Positions 16,501 through 31,500 of a stretch of DNA of 34,908 bases are shown in pieces. Position numbers and translations under genes: made by a program. Each line of letters opens with the position of its first letter. Positions within the stretch are counted from its first letter, which is position 1. A model generated the notes under the pieces. The model had not been told where the DNA came from. It ran no database searches and was given only the letters and a program-made list of their open reading frames with translations. Source of the DNA: Lytechinus pictus (Eukaryota); the NCBI RefSeq assembly GCF_037042905.1, contig NC_087262.1, forward strand, positions 2,232,001 to 2,266,908. The letters run 5' to 3'.

Positions 16501-19500
16501 AGGGGGGCCTACATTATACAAGCTCTGCTTATCAGTTGGCCCTCCCTCCCTTTCAATTATTTATATTTCGATTTGATAATTGTCTATTGTAATTTTATAA
16601 TTTTTTTGTATGTACTTCAAATGTGATTATATGTTACTATGTCAATTGTATCAAAAATTGTAAATATGAAATTGAAAGTGGAAAATAAAATGATTGAATT
16701 GAATTGAATTGAAAAAAAAAAAAAAAAAAAAAAACACCAAGAAATCCGATAGGGAACTGCTTTAGAACAAATATCCGTCGTCAATCGTCGAATCATGTGC
16801 CGGAGCTCGCAGTGGAAGTAGTGAGACGATAATTTAGCATGTTGACATCAAAGAACTGATTTTGAAGAGTAAAAATATTACGCCACCGTGACAAGAATCG
16901 GCCGTAAACTTAGCGTAACGCGGGTGGTCGGTTTCAAAAGACGGGTGCAAATGAGCAAATGTAAAATCGTCGTATTCGTTGTTCGTCGATATATACGCGG
17001 ATTGAATCGAAGTCGCCGAGCGAAACATGGGAATCTGATCTGCTCAATTTTCTGCACAAATGAGACGAAAACTGGGTAAAATTGATGAATATTTTCGCAG
17101 ATACGATGCTTAGAAGATTAGGTGGTCGATAAGGGGTAGTTCTAACCATACTATGGGCTGATGAAAGCGACTCTCACTGAAAATAGAAATAATATAAAAA
17201 ATGAAATGTCGACTGTTTTATTCTTATTTATTTATTTATTTGTTTGTTTGAAAACAGGGAAGCCCATTCAACAATGCGTTGGTCTCACATGGGGCCCTGT
17301 GACAATGTACATATCATAACATAACAATTATATCATTTATATAGCAACATCATAAGAGAGGCATAAATAAATTAGTAAGTACATGTGAAGGAAATATGGA
17401 AACATACAATTAACAATAAAAGTACAATGATTTAAAAAAGCAGATGACGTGAAAGTATTAAGACGTGTATTGTTACAATTACAATTAGCCAAAATCTGAA
17501 AAATTAAGACTTGCCAAGTTTCAAGAACTCGACGTCTTTTCTTCTGTTTTCTTGTGTTCTGTTGAGTCTTGCGAATTCGGCCAACACTAGGCGCTATTAG
17601 GGCTCTGTAGCCTACAATTTACTGATCGATTATTATGTCTGATTTACTGTATCAATATTGATCATTTTGTGGAATATGTCGTTGACAATAATGTTACAAT
17701 CAGTTGCTAGGTTTTGTGATGGGTGCCCAGGCATTGTGTAATGAAATGATGAGCTATGTCAAGTTTTAATACCTCCAGCCGGCCCACAGGCGTACATATT
17801 GGGGGGAGCTTGGGGCCATGGCCCAAAAAGTTTTCTCAACCAAGAAAAAATGGGAGAAAGGTACGTGATTTCAAGGGAAAAGGCTGAAATGTGATATCTT
17901 TCTCCGGATATCAGTAAAAATCTATCCCAAAGTATATTATTTCATTTTTAACACCTGTTTAAAAAAGTCAAACTTTTAACTTTGTAGATTTGTTTTTTCC
18001 CTATACGCCATGTCGGTCCTTTTGTTTTTTTTTGGGGGGGGGTGTTTGTGTTTTTTCTTTATTTTTTGCTCATTACACTACTGCTTCCAGCAAGTTGTTC
18101 CGGGTAAGATCCGAGGATCACCTTGGAATGAAAGGGAGTTTCAGCGTCTTTATTTACAGCGAGAGCGGTGACATGGATGCCCTTCATTGTTGTGTAATTT
18201 ATGTTGAGGAGCAGGTGCCTATGGAGGTTCCACAGATCTTTGTTTATCCCCAATGAACCCAATGGCGAATCACCAAGAAGCTCTTGACCGAAGACTCCCG
18301 CAGGGGAGCATCTAGTTGCCAGGCAATGCGATTAACATTGGGTAAAATATAGATACCAGTAAATGGACCCATAGCGGTAGGCTATATTTGCCGAGTCCAA
18401 GGTTGTCATGTTACATCTTCAGCAACAGTACTGCATCTGTGTACGGTCGTTAAAGGAGCAGTACGACTTTTCGGTGAGGTCGTTGGACGAGCAGATATAC
18501 GACTTTTCGATGAGGTCATTAAAGGAGCAGTACGACATTTTGGTATGGGCGTATATCGTTAAAAGACCAGTAAGCCTACGACATTTTTGTCGTAGTTTTG
18601 TCATTAAACGAACATCACAAAGATCGTGAAGGGCAAATGACGTTTAAAGGGATCCCCTTCCCCATGTTGTTAGTTGGTTTAAATGAAAGCAGAAGAGAAA
18701 AAGGTCGAGGTGGCGGAAGTTTTTAAAATAGATCGCGAAAGCCATAAAATCCCTTTGAAAATGACCAGTAAGTCCGATATCTTGTCTATACAATCTGGAA
18801 GGAAAAAAAAAACTAGTCTAGACATATGTCTAACGTATTTCATCCCTACGGGAAATATAATAACACTCCTGTATGGGGAGCGTTTTATCAACATTTTTAT
18901 CCGACAAGTTGTCAGATCTGACAACTTTCCTTGATGTTGATTGGCTAAGAAGCAGTGTTACTATGGTAACTGTCGGATAAAATGGGAGAATGTCTGACTA
19001 CTCCTTTCATGAAACGCTCCCCTGAGGAGTGTTTCGTGAAATGGCTTGTCAGACATTTTATCCGACAGTTACCATGGAAACTGTGCTCCTCAGCCAATCA
19101 ACATAAAGGAAATTCGTCAGATCTGACAACTTGTCGGATAAAAATGTTGATGAAACGCTCCCCAGCTAAAAGGAGTAGTCCATAAACGATGTTTGGAGAA
19201 ATTACTTTTCTCTAGTTGGAATTCAGGTTCGTTCCATCTCTATAGTACCATGGACCTACTAGCAAAGGTCCATGATAGTACTAGACTTCCTTTTCAAATG
19301 TACTGATTAGAGTTTTAATGGGAACTGCTAGAGTGTGGCATTGATGGAACAGAGAAATGATCGATCCATAGCCTACATTCCTGGATGTTCTTCGAGGGTG
19401 ATAGCCGCATCAATCAACCTTCCCTGGTGTAGCATCCAAACAGGAGGTGAGAGGGGCGTATCGCTGGAACAAAACAATAAAAAGATAGTAAGGTGTCCGA

Positions 19501-22500: not shown

Positions 22501-25500
22501 AACAAAAGTCGTGTGAACATATCCAGGATGACTCTGACTCCTGGGGAGCGTTTCATCAACATTTTCATCCGACAAGTTGTCAGATCTGACATCTTTCCTT
22601 GAATTTGATTGGCTGAAAAGCACAGTTACTATGGTTACTGTCGGAAAAATGGGACTTGTCGGATAAAACGTCCGACAAGTCATTTCATGAAACGCTCCCC
22701 TGATATAGGCATAAGATGAATTTCAAATTCAGATCCAAATCAGCGTTTGAAAGTGGGAAATTTTACCGTTTTATAATCCACACTTTCTTTCCCCAAATTT
22801 AAATGGATGTTTTCTACCGGAAGCGGGACAGAGCAATGAACAGAAACAGTGACACTGTCTCCATGAAAATATCATTTGGTCGAGGAAAATGTAACATCAA
22901 TACCTTGAATTGTCAAAGATCAAGTTTATCATCATGACTAAAAGACAGCTGCAATGCCTCGGAAATGAAATATGGTTATCTGGGAATGTCTCTGGAATCT
23001 CCTTGATGTCGTTACAGGGTAGCAATTTAAATTTCATGACAGATTGGTAACCCCCTGCCAGCCCCATAATGGTCAGTCTGACTTTCACAAACAAATGGAC
23101 TATTTCTCCCCATTAAAGTTGTAGGCCCTAAACATCATAAGACGGATCTGGGCTTCTGTAAACGAGCAGATATGTTATTCTATGGAAATGTTGATGCATA
23201 TGCAATGATTGTACTTTCAGAAAAATTCATCTTTGAGTAGTAAGGAAGGGTACGTGCCAAAAGACATGATAGATCTCATTCTATATTTCTTTCAGAGAAA
23301 GACAGCATCCATTTTAAAAAAATACATTAATGAAGGATCGGCGAACCGCTTTAAAATATGAAAACCAATCTGAATTCCTCAAAGATACATTATCTAATAA
23401 TGTAAATATGTTTATATATACAGTGCGTCCCAGAAAAAACGAAACCGAGATTAAGCGATGATTTATCATAACTTAATCACAAATACAATAGACAAATGAC
23501 CTACCAATGTAAAGCTTAGAATCTCCTCTTTCATCTGATATTACTTCGATTATTCCTCCTTCACGCATGAGTGAGCAAAAACAATTTGAAGAAAGGATAC
23601 CAAAAACTCATTTGGCGGGGGTATCTGAATTTTATAAAGAAAATCACATGCCTAAAAAGTTTAATATCTGCTCTTTAATTTGATACCTTAATCACAAAAA
23701 ATGGTCAAGAAGTAAAAAAGTTACGTTCCCTCGAAACAATGCTTGTATTTCCATAATTTCATTAAATAAACGTGTTTTCACCGGTTTCCCACAGAAGCTA
23801 TCGCATGGTTAACAAAAGACTTCATGCATGGCTGATCGTCAACAAAACGGAGTGTCGAGTGGGTTTGAAGGCTAGCCTGTAAAACCTCTTCATTTTGTGA
23901 AATTATTGAAATTCAAGCCTTATTTCAAATAACCAGAACTTTCTTATTTTTAGACCATTTTCTGTAATTGAGGTATCAAATTAAAGAGCAGATATTGAAC
24001 TTTTTAGAAATGTGGTTTTCTTTTTGAAACCCAGATACAGCCCGCCAAATGACTTTTTGGTATCCCCTCTTCAAATTGTTTTTGCTCACTCATGCGTGAA
24101 TGAGAAATAATCTAAGTAATTTCAGATGAAAGAGGAGATTCTAAGCTTTACAATGGTAGGTCATTTGTCTATTGTACTTGTGATTAAGTTATGATAAATC
24201 ATCGATAAATCTCGGTTTCGTTTTTTGTGGGACGCACTCTATATATATATTTATATACGTAAACTAGATCAAGAGTTCTATATTATATACGTTTTAATTA
24301 AAGGAATAAGCATATTTAATCGTTATATCAGAGTATGATAATAAAGTTTTGTTCATGGTTTCAATCTGAAACATTTTTCTCAATAATTATTGACTCGCCA
24401 AAAAAACCATCTGAAAACAAACCTATTAACTCTTCATCTGAACTCGTTTTATACCACAAAACGCGCTTTGTAACCTCTAAAAAAGCACTATAATATCCAG
24501 TAATTACTATCTGATTATTTGTTTTATTTTGAAATCAAAATTTCCATGACTTGTCTCCTACAGGTTACGCTCCTGTTACTGGTATGTGCGCTATCACAAG
24601 AAGCTGCTCTCTAAACAAAGATGAAGGTCTCTTATCGTCATTTGTGATCGCTCATGAGTCGGGTCACGTGTAAGCTTTCATCCTCGTATTCCATCTATAA
24701 TTCCTTAACATAATATATATTTATGTATAAGAATGTCTTTTCAAGTTAACTTAAATTTTGACGATTATGTGATACTAAAACGATTATTATGAATTGTTGT
24801 CCCTGTTAAAGTGCCAAAGTCAGTTCCTGTATATTGTATCTTTTGTAATATTAATTTTTACCCTCAATGCGATATTCCATACTTTCATAGTATCAATATC
24901 ATAGTGCCAATCCCGGTGCCAATATCTAGTCTACAGAATCAATGGCTGTGTATTTTGTGTATATACTTTGATGGCAGATAAATTATAAAGTTTAGTTACT
25001 TTATAAAGTGTATAATATTTTGTTTTAGGAATCGTCAAAGATGTTTTTTTTTTTAGATTTCCTTGTATTTGAACTATTTCCCTGTATAAGATTATACTTT
25101 GACTACCATTATATATTTCTTATAAAATTGAAAGTAAAGAACGACGCATGTACCTAATGTGAAGTTAGGAGAAAGAAAAATCCACACCTATCAGATTTCA
25201 AAACAGTCATTTTACTTTTGTTTAAATCATTTTTCAATTATTATCTTAATTAAACGAAAATTATACAGTCATACATAATTGGCGCTAACTTGATAAATTT
25301 GTTCACAGCTTTTGTAACCTTCGAGAAGTAAACAATTATGGTGTCTACATGGGTACTCTGCAATTTATGGTACAAGTGCATTTCATTTCGGGCATTGTTT
25401 CTGTATAAGAAACGATATAAATCTGTAGTTTAGTTTCATAATATGGAAACGATTATATGAAACTCCATCAAGACACAACGTCTTATTTCAATTCCAATTA

Positions 25501-28500
25501 GTACATTTAAAATCCAGGTCCCACAGCAGGCGGATTTGTAAATAGAGAAAATCAAACGAGCATATTATGCTGTCAAGTCCGTCAGAGTCGTATGTAAAAT
25601 AAGAATGTTTTGACCTTTTAAAGTCTGCAGATGAGTGAGCCGATGATGAAGCACACACTTACTTTTTATTTTGTTATTATTATATGAAATATTATTGTAT
25701 GAAATATTTCAAACAATTTTGTTTTATATGACAATAAGAAAATTATTGATTGATTCATAATCCGTTACAACAATTGAAAATCCACATGTCCACAGTCATG
25801 GCAGTGGAATTAAAAACCATTTGGATTTGTGTGCATTTTAAAGAGGGAAAAATTAAATATTTCGTGTTATAAAGTGCAAGGAATGTGTGACATTGGGGTA
25901 AATCCGTGACGTCATACTGGGGGATAGAAAATAGATCACCCCCCTTGAACAAAATGTTCACTGCTCGGATTAATGCCAGTGGTTTGTGACGTCATCATTT
26001 CTCTTTTTATATAGCACCTGTGTTCTGCATAATTTTTTTTTTTTTTTAAAGGCCAAACTTTAAAAAGCCACAACGTTCTTTATTTCACACCCGACGTTTG
26101 CCGGAACTTTCAGCATCATACCTGTGTATTTTTTTTATTTTTCTCTCTCTCTATACATTCAAATTCGCATGTTCATAAAGTGGGCGTGACCTAAATAGAT
26201 TTTCAATTACCCAAAAGGGCTTCCACTGGGCAATGATATTAAGAAATTCTATGGAGCAAATTGCCCCTGAGATTTAGAAATATTCTTTATTTTACTCATG
26301 TAAACACCACTTTTGTGACTTACCACCATTTTCTGCCCTCCTCCAATCTCATCAAAAGTTTTGGCATGGAGCACGACGGCCAAGGAAACACGTGTGAAGA
26401 TGATGCGTCTCGAGGTTCCATCATGGCGCCCGTCGTTATATCGACCTACATTCACTACTTCTGGTCGAAGTGTAGTCGTATCGAGCTCAACCGATACCTA
26501 TCGTGAGTATCCGATACCTTTAACCCCCTTTCTCTCTTCCTTCCATTCCTCCGTCCGTCTTCTTCTGCTTCTAATCCATAGTTTCGGGATGGAACACGAC
26601 GGCGTCGGCAACACCTGTAAGCGCGACCAGTTACGGGGCTCTATCATGTCGCCGGTCGTCAAGGCCACTTACACCCGGTACTTCTGGTCGGTTTGCAGTC
26701 AGTACGAGCTTCACCGGTATCTCTCGTGAGTAGGTTCTGCTTTGTACATCCGGTTTGCCATATGGATTCGGTTTTACTTTCTTTCGGTTTTCTTGTCATC
26801 CGACTCACCCTCGCATCCGACTTATCCGTTCATCCGACTAGTTTCCTCTTTCAAATTTTATTTTCGTTTTGAGTTTTTCGTTATTTCATTTTCATTTGTG
26901 ATTTTGGAGCATGGTGCTTGGTTTAATGGTATTTTTTTATTTGATTGATCTAACTTGATTCCTAATCTGTTTATCGTTGATCGTTTGTTAGTGTTTGTAA
27001 CCTTGTATATTCGTCTACTTGTATTCAGTGTTGTTTTGTACAATTATATATTCAGTTAAATTTATAGACTCATTTTATCAACTCTTTAAGTGGTTGGTTC
27101 ATTGTTCATAATGTATTGGTTAGAGGAAGACCAAATCAATGGAAAGGTTTTCTGAAGAGCGAATGATTGGTCTGAACGAGGAACGCAATCTTTCGTAGGA
27201 GGGAAACTGACTGCTGTAGTCAGTTTATTGCAGCAATAAATGATGATGATGGAATATGAAAGGTTCTGTGTTAATATCATTTCTCATTCTTTCTTACTCC
27301 CAAGTTTACCTTGCGCTATATCGTTGTATGAAGCAGAAAGTTTTCATTAAACCATGAGGATGTATTATTGTGTGACTCACTTGTTTGTCAAACAAAGTTT
27401 AAGTTTTCTCAACCATTTCATCTCGTGTTCAGTTGGGAAATCATATTAATAAAATATTTACCATAATATTCATTGCGTGTTCTGATGATATTGGATCTTA
27501 CCTGTGGATCGAATTCTATCATTGCCATCCTCGTGTAGACCCTATGTTATCATGTGACTCGTTATTTGTGTTGTGTTGTATTTGGCCGATGTTTGTGTCT
27601 GGTTGTATTTGGTTTTGTTCGGGATTGCTTTCTTCTGACTTTAACAATTCTATGGGAGTGTGTATTTGAGTTTTGTCAGACGTGTATCAATCAGATATGA
27701 TTATTTACGTCTGGGACCGACCTTTAACGTCACCATCCGAAAGACGTGACCAGGGCTCGAACCTCGAACCTTATGCATCAATTTGTAACTTCCCCACATA
27801 GCTTGGATTACAGGCGCACGCCACAACGCCCAGGGAGTGTGCATGTATTGCAAATCAGTAGAACAGTATAACATTGTTTGACAGTTAACAGTATAGACCT
27901 ACATTGAAGGCATCCCTGCTGGAAACCTCAAAGTCACACAGTGTTTTCATCGTGTATTCAGTGTGTTCACACTCACAGTGCATTCATTGTATATTCAGTG
28001 TGTTCACAGCGTGTCCACAGTGTGTTCACCGTATATTCAGTGTTTTCACAGTGTTCATTGTATATTCAGTGTGTTCACTGTATATCCAGTGTGTCCACAG
28101 TGTGTTCACTGTATATTCAGTGTGTTCACAGTGTCTTCATTTATATTCAGTGTGTTCACAACGTGTTCACAGTGTGTTCACTGTATATTCCGTGTGTCCA
28201 CAGCGTGTTCACTGTATATTCAGTGTGTCCACAGTGTTTTCATTGTATATTCAGTGTGTTCACAGCGTGTCCACAGTGTGTTCATTGTATATTCAGTGTG
28301 TTCACAGCGTGTCCACAGTGTGTTCACTGTATATTCAATGTGTTCACAGCGTGTCCACAGTGTGTTCACTGTATATGCAATGTGTTCACAGCGTGTCCAC
28401 AGTGTGTTCACTGTATATTCAGTGTGTTCACAGCGTGTTCACAGTGGCCCGTATTCTAAAGTCGGGTTTAACTTAAACTCAGGATTAAGTATGGATAGCC

Positions 28501-31500
28501 AATTGTTACATAAATCAATAACAGTAGAGATATCATATTTCAGCTCATTTGGCTTTCAAATCATTCATAATTATATAAGAAGTGTAAATGGATGATTGTC
28601 TTCACCATCAATGAATCAGGAAAGAACACAATAAACATAAGAAACATAGAACTTAATAAAAATGTTGACACTTTTGGCTTCCCATAATTTTAGCACAGAG
28701 TTAGACCATGGTCTAAGTTAAACCTGTCTTCAGTGTGTATTCAGTGTGTTCACAGCGTGTCCACAGTGTGTTCACAGTGTATTCATAGTATATTCAGTGT
28801 GTTCACAGCGTATTCATTGTATTAACGGTCTTTTGACAGTGGGACACACAGTATATTCACATTGCGTTTAGTGTTTTTCATAGTGTTTTCAAACTGTGTT
28901 CACAGTGTGTTCATTATGTGTTCACAGTGTGTTCAAATTGTATTCACAGTGACTCCAAATAATGTTCACAGTGTTTTACAATGTGTGCACAGTGTGTCCA
29001 TGTGACGGACTAAATTTAAGTGTATGAATAATTTCACACTTTGGACACAGTGTGTACACATACAGGACTCTGAATATGAGATTTACAATGTTTGATTTTA
29101 GCATTGTAAAAAGAACAGTGTAAAAATGCATGGATTCGCATCATGTTCAACACTGTGAACACACTTTGTGATACACTGTGACACTATGAATTTTTCCACT
29201 AGGGATTAGGCCCGACAAATTTCGTCATTCGTTTTACTTCGTTTCACGGAATATAACAAATATTAATGCATGACAAACACTGGAAGAAATGGAGTTTTAT
29301 TGTACGAACAACATGAGAAATGATTAACATTCACCAGGAACATAACATAGTTATATTTACACTGATTTCCCCCAAATAATATGCATGGTCTGATTGTTGA
29401 AAAGCAAGAACATGAATTGCTGGAAAGTGAAATAATACTACTACTAATAATAACAATAATAATGATGATAATAATGATAATAAAAAACCACGAAGCATAT
29501 CACTTATTCATGAGGATTATATGTTTCCTGTTGTTTCTTTTCACCAATTAACAACATTGATAACATTTACTTTTCTGATAATTGTATAAGCACTTAGAGG
29601 AATCTGAATGTTGAAACGGTTATCCGTACTCACTTTAATTCCTTTTTCTAGTCGGTACTATTGCTTGTGGGATGATCCTTTCGATAGCGGATATCCGGAG
29701 GTCCGGCAGTATCCGGGTCGGCGCTATACAATGGATGAACAATGTCGGTTTGATTTCGGTCACGGCTACCGCACGTGTACCGCGGTAAGTGACAGTTTTT
29801 GGAGGTGAAACCTTTTCAGTGGCAGTTTTGATAATCGGGAATGTGATTTATTCAAATCCTAACAAGCAGAACAATTTCCTTCAGAATTTATATGGGAATA
29901 TACTGTACATGTATAAGTTTTAAGAACATGGATTTCCTTAATCAAAATGTGAGCAAGATTTTTGTTCAGAGTTCATTTGATACGTCTAAAGTTGTGCAAT
30001 TGATCCTTTAGGATTTTCGTAAGGAGAAAAAATTATTGTTACCTATATGCATAAAACTAAAGTTGTTGAGAATATCAATTATGCAGTCGAAGGAATAAAG
30101 ATTATGATATTTGAATAATTTTATGGCAGTCGTTTTAACAATGTTTTAACGTTTCTCAATTTGAATGAAATTCAACAGTTTTATTACAATCCATGTCAAG
30201 AGTTGTGGTGCATGCATCCGACCAGTTACAACTGCCGTACACGTAACGGACCACCACTGGATGGGACCGCCTGTGGTCCGGGCATGGTAAGGTGTAGCTT
30301 ATGGTCACTATACTGAAAGTTCCCCGTGGAATGAAACAAGGCTTATCTTCCGCTCACAAATATAGCTTTAAAAAAGATGTGATAAACTTTATGGCTCCAA
30401 ATATGATGCAGTCAGCTATGTAACTACTCATAGGTGAACATGGTAAAGAAAAGTTAAGGTTATGCTGTGAGCGGAACGTCAAACCCTTATTTCATTTATG
30501 GGCTTAATAATTGCCATTTACTAACCAACTTCTTCATCTTTCATTCTCGCTTTACCCAACCGGAAACAGTTCAATGATTACGACAAATGCGACCAACTGT
30601 GGTGTATGCACTACCGCAAAAGATATGTTTGTCGGACTAAGAAAGGTCCGCCGTTAGACGGCACAGAATGTGGTCCGGGAATGGTAAGAAAATGGTCGGA
30701 TTTCCCGCCTGTCGGATGACGATGTGGAATTTCTTAGGCTCGTGATACAGCAAAAAAAAAGCTCTTCAACATTTTGTTTTACGGGGGTGAATTCTTAGGG
30801 GGGTTTGGGTATCAGAAAATTAAAGAGGAGTTGAACACCTGTACCCCCCCCCTCTGCGTATGCTACTGTATAGGATTATGGGTTTGCTTTCATATTAGAG
30901 GGATTTAAACTAGATCAACACTGTTTCCAGAACATACGTCTTCTGAATACTGATGATGTCATTTTATGAAGATTCTGTATACGATAGTGGTTGGGCTAGT
31001 AGTTGGATTTAATTGTTTCAACCTTTATAATAAAATAGAAAAATATGAAAAATGCTAAAGAAAGATGGGCCAAAATTGTATTACAAAATTGAAAATGAGG
31101 ACGATATAATATATCAGAGTATTTCTTGGTCTACATAAATTGAACCAAGGGAAATCTCTCTTACATTAAGACGATTCCTATTAATGTTCATAAAGTATAT
31201 CGTTCCACCTTATAGAGAAAATGAACTTTATCTTTGTTATCGTTTTTTTGGTTTCTTGCTCATTTAAGTGACACATTGTATATATTAGAACCTTATGTAT
31301 TCATTATTTTAAGAAAGAGAACTTGGCGGGTTAAAATAGTTCCTGGATTCCACATTGTCTCTGATTGGTCGGGTTTCCCTATTGAATTCTGCACGAGAGC
31401 ACCTTGCATAGATCCTTGTGGTTTTGCACATTATCGGAGAAGTACTACATCAGGCAGACTGGAATGAAAATGCAAAATGTATATATTACATTCATTATTT

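Follow-up and report, generated by a model that had tools for sequence, protein, structure and literature searches.

We analyzed 34,908 nt of the genome of the sea urchin Lytechinus pictus (contig NC_087262.1 of assembly GCF_037042905.1, positions 2,232,001 to 2,266,908 of the forward strand). This whole stretch is called the window below, and positions refer to it unless another locus is named. The window carries part of a gene for an ADAMTS metalloprotease, in which the exon for the last part of the catalytic domain is present as two adjacent homologous copies, F1 and F2. An earlier note, made from the DNA letters without database searches, had described this pair and proposed that one gene makes two proteases by using one copy or the other. 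The exons concerned and the intron between the copies are as follows.

24564 to 24669, forward strand: upstream constitutive exon E, read from the sequence; position 24669 is spliced to F1 and to F2 in RNA contigs.
26359 to 26502, forward strand: exon F1, 144 nt, with AG before and GTGAGT after it; the ancestral-like copy.
26503 to 26581, forward strand: F1-F2 intron, 79 nt; found unspliced in contigs of RNA runs X1 and X5 and never seen removed on its own.
26582 to 26725, forward strand: exon F2, 144 nt, with AG before and GTGAGT after it; the divergent copy.
29652 to 29787, forward strand: downstream constitutive exon G, read from the sequence; the loose ends behind 26502 and 26725 match its first 28 nt.

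The 3' end of exon E encodes HESGHV, with the first two zinc histidines and the catalytic Glu, and joining E to either F exon rebuilds HESGHVFGMEHD, the full metzincin zinc motif. With either copy, the ADAMTS motif HExxHxxGxxHD and the Met-turn were present (HESGHV + FGMEHD, then SIM). Exon G begins with SRYYCLWDD and covers the end of the catalytic domain, the connector, and the start of the disintegrin-like domain. A search with a Diadema setosum protein matched the L. variegatus protein 'ADAMTS 3-like isoform X1', and the next matches were vertebrate ADAMTS14 or ADAMTS3, with 58-61% identity over exons E to H. Alignment to the structures of ADAMTS-1/-4/-5/-13 gave E values down to 3e-47. 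The L. variegatus orthologue (P0151) contained PF01562, PF01421, PF17771, PF00090, PF19236, PF05986, and PF19030 above the Pfam cut-offs, which is the full ADAMTS set of propeptide, disintegrin-like ADAMTS_CR_2, TSP1, Cys-rich, and spacer domains with C-terminal TSP1 repeats. The window encodes residues ~189-665 of the protein, with an 18-kb intron between 2368 and 20720. These sequence comparisons indicate that the gene is a sea urchin ADAMTS most closely related, among vertebrate proteins, to ADAMTS3 and ADAMTS14. The placement with ADAMTS2/3/14 rests on best hits and on the NCBI name 'ADAMTS3-like', and a tree of the 47 residues of the F exon did not resolve it.

F1 and F2 are separated by 79 nt and have the same phase, with codons split 2 nt + 1 nt at both ends. 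Their translations are stop-free, 47 residues long, and identical at 33 positions. They are thus adjacent homologous exons of equal length, equal phase, and 70% amino acid identity, as found in mutually exclusive pairs. Both copies retain GMEHD with the third zinc histidine, the Met-turn (SIM), both cysteines, and the tryptophan. F1 encodes GMEHD and the EDDAS loop, followed by the Met-turn, the residues of the S1' wall, and the final helix of the catalytic domain. F2 has the same motifs, but its loop reads KRDQL and its S1' wall PVVKATYTR. Direct counting gave net charges of -2 for F1 and +2 for F2. When either F peptide was compared with the whole window by tblastn, each recovered the other with an E value of ~1e-21 and the remaining matches were noise; a third copy was absent from the window in this search, which leaves exactly two. 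Coordinates, splice sites, and translations agreed with the two tandem, stop-free 144-nt exons of phase 2-2 reported in the earlier note. Its identity of 33/47 was reproduced on the alignment of the translations, its list of retained motifs (GMEHD, Met-turn, Cys, and Trp) was seen in both copies, and the differing residues that it quoted (EDDAS against KRDQL, and those after the Met-turn) were right. It had also placed the end of E at 24669 and the start of G at 29652, both correctly; its start of E, 24563, should be 24564, an offset due to a G that could belong to either side of the joint.

Two word-index searches gave about 20 small contig sets that contained the exons and lacked most of the intron and the flanks. 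Four runs, two of contigs (X1 and X5) and two of raw reads (X20 and X23), were mapped onto 24450-27500. This stretch avoids a tandem repeat at 27937-28997 and excludes exon G, and joints from F to G were read from loose contig ends. Run X1 came from organism A, whose F1 is identical to that of the window. Run X5 came from organism B, which has the two synonymous differences in F1 by which L. variegatus is distinguished from L. pictus. The presence of GT..AG joints indicated that the contigs of run X1 were derived from RNA.

Run X1 contained the joint 24669 to 26359 (E to F1) at a depth of 32.6 and the joint 24669 to 26582 (E to F2) at a depth of 17.7. Behind both 26502 and 26725, the contigs ran on into one identical 28-letter sequence, with which exon G opens at 29652. 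Both F copies were spliced to the common upstream exon E and the common downstream exon G. The joint 26502 to 26582 (F1 to F2) was not seen in the two contig runs and two raw-read runs, in which coverage was low and contigs drop rare forms. The four joints from E and to G that the earlier note had proposed to count were all present in run X1, and its view of one gene with two alternative-exon products, from E through F1 or F2 to G, held up. The RefSeq models of L. variegatus agree with it. In these models, given below together with a second exon pair, H1 and H2, F1 or F2 is used and never both.

XP_041485782.1: L. variegatus RefSeq isoform X1, F1+H2.
XP_041485783.1: L. variegatus RefSeq isoform X2, F2+H2.
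XP_041485784.1: L. variegatus RefSeq isoform X3, F2+H1.

These results support the conclusion that F1 and F2 are mutually exclusive tandem-duplicated exons, each mRNA being E-F1-G or E-F2-G. Some points weigh against this conclusion. The junction evidence comes mainly from the assembled contigs of a single run (X1), with rough depths. Raw reads contributed one E to F2 read, from run X23 with a gene coverage of 1-2x, and none from run X20, which had no coverage on the gene. The contigs of run X5 assembled only the F1 path that retains the intron, and the mapped stretch lacks exon G, so that skipping from E to G was beyond its scope. Among the matches listed, runs X11, X4, X12, X13, and X14 appeared to contain F2 but not F1, and others to contain both; this is no more than a hint of regulation, in run-level word shares that are affected by contig dropout.

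We also observed an isolated peak in the intron between E and F1. Over 33 nt (25592-25624), word depth reached ~3200 in run X1 and hundreds of raw reads matched, and these reads continued into unrelated sequence on both sides. The peak seems to reflect a short stretch shared with an abundant transcript or repeat from another locus, and not expression of the intron.

The exon pair was compared among the four loci listed below, of which the TARA scaffold is echinoid genomic DNA in an ocean metagenome (TARA_SAMEA2732765 scaffold_217593, L008 80-661).

L. pictus, window: F1 26359-26502, F2 26582-26725, intron 79 nt.
L. variegatus, locus L007: F1 62353-62493, F2 62578-62718, intron 81 nt (tblastn coordinates).
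TARA scaffold of an unidentified echinoid, locus L008: F1 170-310, F2 392-532, intron 78 nt (tblastn coordinates).
Diadema setosum, locus L006: a single F1-like exon and no F2.

F1 was 91% identical to the single exon of Diadema setosum (1159-aa protein). Neither the 614-nt intron leading to exon G nor the rest of the 50-kb Diadema locus contained a remnant of a second copy. Between L. pictus and the TARA echinoid, F1 had a synonymous divergence (dS) of 0.93 and a nonsynonymous divergence (dN) of 0.046, giving a ratio (omega) of 0.05, and F2 had a dS of 0.49 and a dN of 0.018 (omega 0.04). Both copies are intact, neither is decaying, and both are under strong purifying selection; the decay in related species that the earlier note had regarded as evidence against its proposal was seen neither in L. 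variegatus nor in the TARA echinoid. Between F1 and F2, synonymous sites were saturated and dN was 0.23. In the tree of the 47 residues, F2 formed a long, well-supported branch inside an echinoderm-like group; a duplication before or after the Diadema split was compatible with this tree (approximately unbiased test, p 0.14 and 0.45), which leaves it undated. Counting by hand against a vertebrate outgroup gave 5 F2-specific and 2 F1-specific changes, a difference that was not significant.

A search of a set of 5.8 billion proteins for F2-like fragments matched only the TARA scaffold, and the E-F2-G-H2 piece, used as a query, matched no additional echinoderm. With the Diadema protein as query, a Strongylocentrotus orthologue was not found within the length range searched. 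A scan of metagenome contigs gave only relatives of 40-47% and no orthologue. One candidate found with F1, a 193-aa protein called on the TARA scaffold with both exons apparently in frame (P0001), was rejected as a gene-calling artefact in which the TGA of the intron was read as Trp.

The three other ADAMTS genes of the genome that matched F1 have one intact copy of the exon each. In an ADAMTS gene other than that of the window (L004, G000:C2:52778565-52781696), the homologous exon is intact once, at 1501-1635 of that locus, and is followed by three partial, degenerate copies of its 3' end (WSACxxKSLDDFL-like; ~1716-1829, 1990-2035, and 2231-2308), one of them with a stop. These look like a tandem repeat of the exon end and intron start, and they are probably non-functional.

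In a rival reading of the F pair, only one exon would be of importance, and the other would be a leftover duplicate spliced as noise or only into unproductive RNA. Diadema manages with one F1-like exon, the RefSeq model of L. pictus uses only F2, and the sole F1 path assembled in run X5 retains the intron. However, run X1 joins both exons to E and G at similar depth, omega is ~0.04-0.05 for both over a dS of 0.5-0.9, and RefSeq isoforms of L. variegatus exist for each exon. A single functional copy is thus highly improbable and already largely refuted.

RNA containing both F exons does exist, but with the intron retained and a stop. In run X1, an unspliced contig from F1 through the 79-nt intron into F2 had a depth of 11.1, compared with ~2 for the intron after F2 and 0 for the intron before F1. 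The sum of this depth and that of the E to F2 joint (17.7 + 11.1) was close to the depth of the F2 contig (26.4), which suggests that molecules retaining this intron are mostly spliced at their other introns. The approximate shares in run X1 were ~21 for E-F1-G, ~18 for E-F2-G, and ~11 for E-F1-intron-F2. Run X5 yielded one 458-nt contig in which the preceding exon D, E, and F1 were spliced and were followed by the retained 79-nt intron into F2. Read through from F1, the intron gives TC+GTGA, that is TCG TGA, and places a stop directly after F1 in all three species compared. The exclusive joints foreseen by the earlier note were found, while this third product, with intron kept and a stop after F1, had not been foreseen.

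When both exons are recognised, the intron would be kept and the message would end at the TGA directly after F1. Such a message may be a substrate of nonsense-mediated decay (NMD) or may encode a protease truncated after the catalytic domain. The latter would make E-F1-intron-F2-G a functional output in its own right, a short protease of propeptide and catalytic domain that ends in ...RYLS and is devoid of the disintegrin-like, TSP1, Cys-rich, and spacer domains. Its RNA accounts for ~1/5 of the transcripts in run X1 and is the assembled path in run X5, and the stop directly after F1 is kept in all three species. This conservation is not independent evidence, because exon phase and the GTGAGT donor dictate the TGA automatically. 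Moreover, later exon junctions follow the stop at a distance of >200 nt, which normally marks a message for NMD, and ADAMTS enzymes generally need their ancillary domains for substrate recognition (PMC4885070). We therefore regard a functional short protease as unlikely.

A spliced F1-F2 mRNA would be in frame and beyond the reach of NMD, and something must block this joining. Two elements were read from the sequence of the F1-F2 intron.

26518 to 26524, forward strand: CTTTAAC, a candidate for a distant branch site; its branch adenine would be 26523, at +21 relative to the F1 donor.
26525 to 26573, forward strand: polypyrimidine tract, ~87% C/T, with UCUU/CUCUCU motifs.

The intron is restricted in size in L. 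pictus, L. variegatus, and the TARA echinoid (79, 81, and 78 nt, respectively), whereas neighbouring introns differ by many indels. In the comparison of L. pictus with the TARA echinoid, its last 50 nt were identical at 44 positions (88%) without gaps, and the flanking introns were ~75% identical with many gaps. From +22 on, the intron is 83-87% pyrimidine, forming a long tract from ~+22 to -10. No AG was present in the intron sequence between the F1 donor and the F2 acceptor, and RNA folding of the intron region revealed no unusual structure (z = -0.6). Since the usual order is branch point, pyrimidine tract, and AG, the branch point of F2 would be expected at about +16 to +26, and CTTTAAC, which is kept in L. 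variegatus, fits this interval. The F1 donor and a branch point no more than ~16-26 nt away from it would lie too near each other to serve one intron together; the cited limit below which a donor and a branch site cannot act simultaneously is ~50 nt (PMC7969005). Exclusivity would then be enforced physically, by steric hindrance in a short intron filled with pyrimidines. RNA with both exons and the intron unremoved is what this model predicts. Exclusion of the two exons is probably steric and mediated by a distant branch point.

Some features of the intron weigh against steric exclusion. The TARA echinoid does not share the distal CTTTAAC and has other candidate adenines, at +16 and +26. A proximal TTCTAAT is well matched, with its A at -8 from the F2 acceptor, and its TAA is also found in the TARA echinoid. 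A branch at -8 would be ~70 nt from the donor, and the intron would therefore be spliceable. Use of the exons could accordingly be exclusive without steric hindrance, with the proximal TAA, 8 nt before the F2 acceptor, as the branch and competing regulators choosing between the exons; PTB-type proteins on the UCUU/CUCUCU tract would make removal of the small intron slow or repressed. TTCTAAT fits the branch consensus better than CTTTAAC, its TAA occurs in all three species, and the conserved pyrimidine tract holds typical PTB-type motifs. Against such regulation, a branch A at -8 leaves no polypyrimidine tract before the acceptor, as the 50-nt tract lies upstream of it, and the AG-free zone comprises the entire intron. 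Nor does it fit well with an intron length fixed at 78-81 nt beside adjacent introns that vary by many indels, or with both-exon RNA that retains the intron instead of splicing it. We consider regulation without steric hindrance possible but doubtful, and prefer steric exclusion.

Conservation was also seen beyond F2. The first ~70 nt of the following intron (26726-26800; GTGAGTAGG..., TTCGGTTTTCTT.TCATCCGACT) are well conserved between L. pictus and the TARA echinoid, and this stretch may be a splicing control element.

The F exon aligned with the last ~50 residues of the catalytic (M) domain of ADAMTS-1/-4/-5/-13. The last part of the M domain forms a portion of the substrate-pocket wall and is a divergent region of M12B enzymes (PMC4885070). 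In the alignment, the Met of SIM corresponded to Met439 of ADAMTS5, the Met-turn methionine. Leu443 of ADAMTS5, which contacts the P1' group of an inhibitor as an S1' contact (PMC9620172), aligned with the second valine of the PVV sequence, after which F1 has I-S and F2 has K-A. According to the alignment to solved ADAMTS structures, 10 of the 14 differences between F1 and F2 fall in two loops around the Met-turn and 4 on the last helix. They are located in the loop after the third zinc His, at the residue after the Met-turn, in the S1' wall, and on the surface of the last helix. Use of one copy or the other gives two full-length proteases whose lower catalytic subdomain differs at these 14 positions. 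It is plausible that the F1 and F2 isoforms differ in primed-side substrate preference or in inhibitor preference. Taken as a whole, mutually exclusive use of F1 and F2, combined with the putative steric exclusion and the predicted difference in primed-side preference, is the best explanation of these observations, and one in which we have considerable confidence.

A second duplicated pair was found in the disintegrin-like domain, downstream of exon G.

30179 to 30286, forward strand: exon H1, 108 nt, phase 0; used in L. variegatus RefSeq isoform X3 and present in Diadema.
30570 to 30683, forward strand: exon H2, 114 nt, phase 0; used in the L. pictus model and in two L. variegatus RefSeq isoforms, X1 and X2, and present in Diadema.

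H1 and H2 have ~66% amino acid identity. Both are present in Diadema setosum, so that the H duplication dates from the Diadema split or earlier. They are separated by an intron of 283-396 nt, which makes steric exclusion unlikely for this pair. The H exons aligned with the disintegrin-like part of ADAMTS13 that holds the V-loop and the hypervariable region, which together form exosite 1 beside the active-site cleft (PMC4885070). On our reading of the alignment, they match Arg349/Leu350 of ADAMTS13 residue for residue. The two exclusive clusters may constitute a splice-encoded specificity switch, with up to four enzymes of matched cleft and exosite and with the intron-retaining RNA of both F exons as a regulated off-state. 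In such a switch, F1/F2 would recharge the primed side of the cleft (I to K beside the S1' contact) and H1/H2 would swap loops in the exosite region. We propose this switch tentatively, with appreciably less confidence than the exclusive use of F1 and F2.

The RefSeq model of L. pictus, XP_063969476.1, contains only F2+H2, and its exons match the window exactly; the F1 isoform is not annotated in this species. The model is truncated at its 5' end. It starts at an exon at 18408-18545, which is probably spurious, and omits the upstream coding exons 1380-1535 and 2120-2368, which match L. variegatus residues 189-322. The L. pictus entries XP_054773591.1 and XP_054773305.1, of the same cluster, look like pieces of the same gene. 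Within the large ADAMTS intron of the L. variegatus locus, a 208-aa gene with a protein-kinase domain was called on the minus strand (L007 44237-45390). The intron between F2 and G contains imperfect tandem arrays of an 11-nt unit (CAGTGTGTTCA) at 27937-28446 and 28731-28997, with higher-order periods of 42 and 84 nt, and these arrays produce long spurious open reading frames.

To our knowledge, few exclusive exon pairs exchange part of a catalytic centre. F1 and F2 are a new example of a known form of splicing, in the active site of a protease. They offer a clean swap of 14 residues in the pocket-forming lower subdomain of an otherwise identical enzyme, with a second swap in the exosite loops of the neighbouring domain. 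For ADAMTS biochemistry, this is a natural pair or quartet with which to ask which residues set primed-side specificity or inhibitor sensitivity. The annotation of L. pictus is corrected by the F1 isoform and the 5' exons that it lacks.

Among the closest known systems are the RefSeq models of L. variegatus, which have the same F and H alternatives but are automatic predictions without a word on duplication, mechanism, or active-site location. Alternative use of F is already in this automatic annotation and is undescribed in the literature searched. A full-text search found no paper on exclusive exons in any ADAMTS or metzincin, nor on alternative splicing of a sea urchin ADAMTS. Vertebrate ADAMTS3/14 genes have a homologous exon with the same boundaries, since genomic open reading frame fragments start with GMEHD and end with RYI or RYL; unlike the urchin F1/F2, it is present in one copy per gene in the sequences retrieved. 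The earlier note had suggested a splicing-based counterpart to the ADAMTS2/3/14 paralogues. This comparison is weak, because a protein named ADAMTS14 and one named ADAMTS3-like are nearly identical after the Met-turn, unlike the diversified F1 and F2, and it was set aside since the named vertebrate paralogues retrieved barely differ in the segment.

In a human survey, ~9% of exclusive-exon clusters had a donor-branch point distance <50 bp (PMC5740500). The F pair resembles exons 2/3 of alpha-tropomyosin and other steric pairs in its tandem duplication, equal length and phase, and putative donor-branch proximity. No ADAMTS or metalloprotease is mentioned in the text of that survey (PMC5740500). 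A further close parallel is provided by exons 4a/4b of vertebrate OGDH, for which distant branch points and a long polypyrimidine tract were shown experimentally to enforce exclusivity and to fix intron size (PMC7969005). In both cases, homologous tandem exons are separated by a short, size-restricted intron that is largely pyrimidine tract, candidate branch adenines lie far below ~50 nt from the upstream donor, and two isoforms tune, or here would tune, the properties of an enzyme. Unlike in OGDH, the branch points here are candidates, the intron is even shorter (78-81 nt), and the enzyme is a secreted echinoderm metalloprotease. Double inclusion would also be in frame here, so that NMD cannot police a spliced F1-F2 product. 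For the study of splicing, the gene would thus represent an invertebrate deuterostome case of the OGDH-like layout of a distant branch point and a long pyrimidine tract, with a visible dead-end product.

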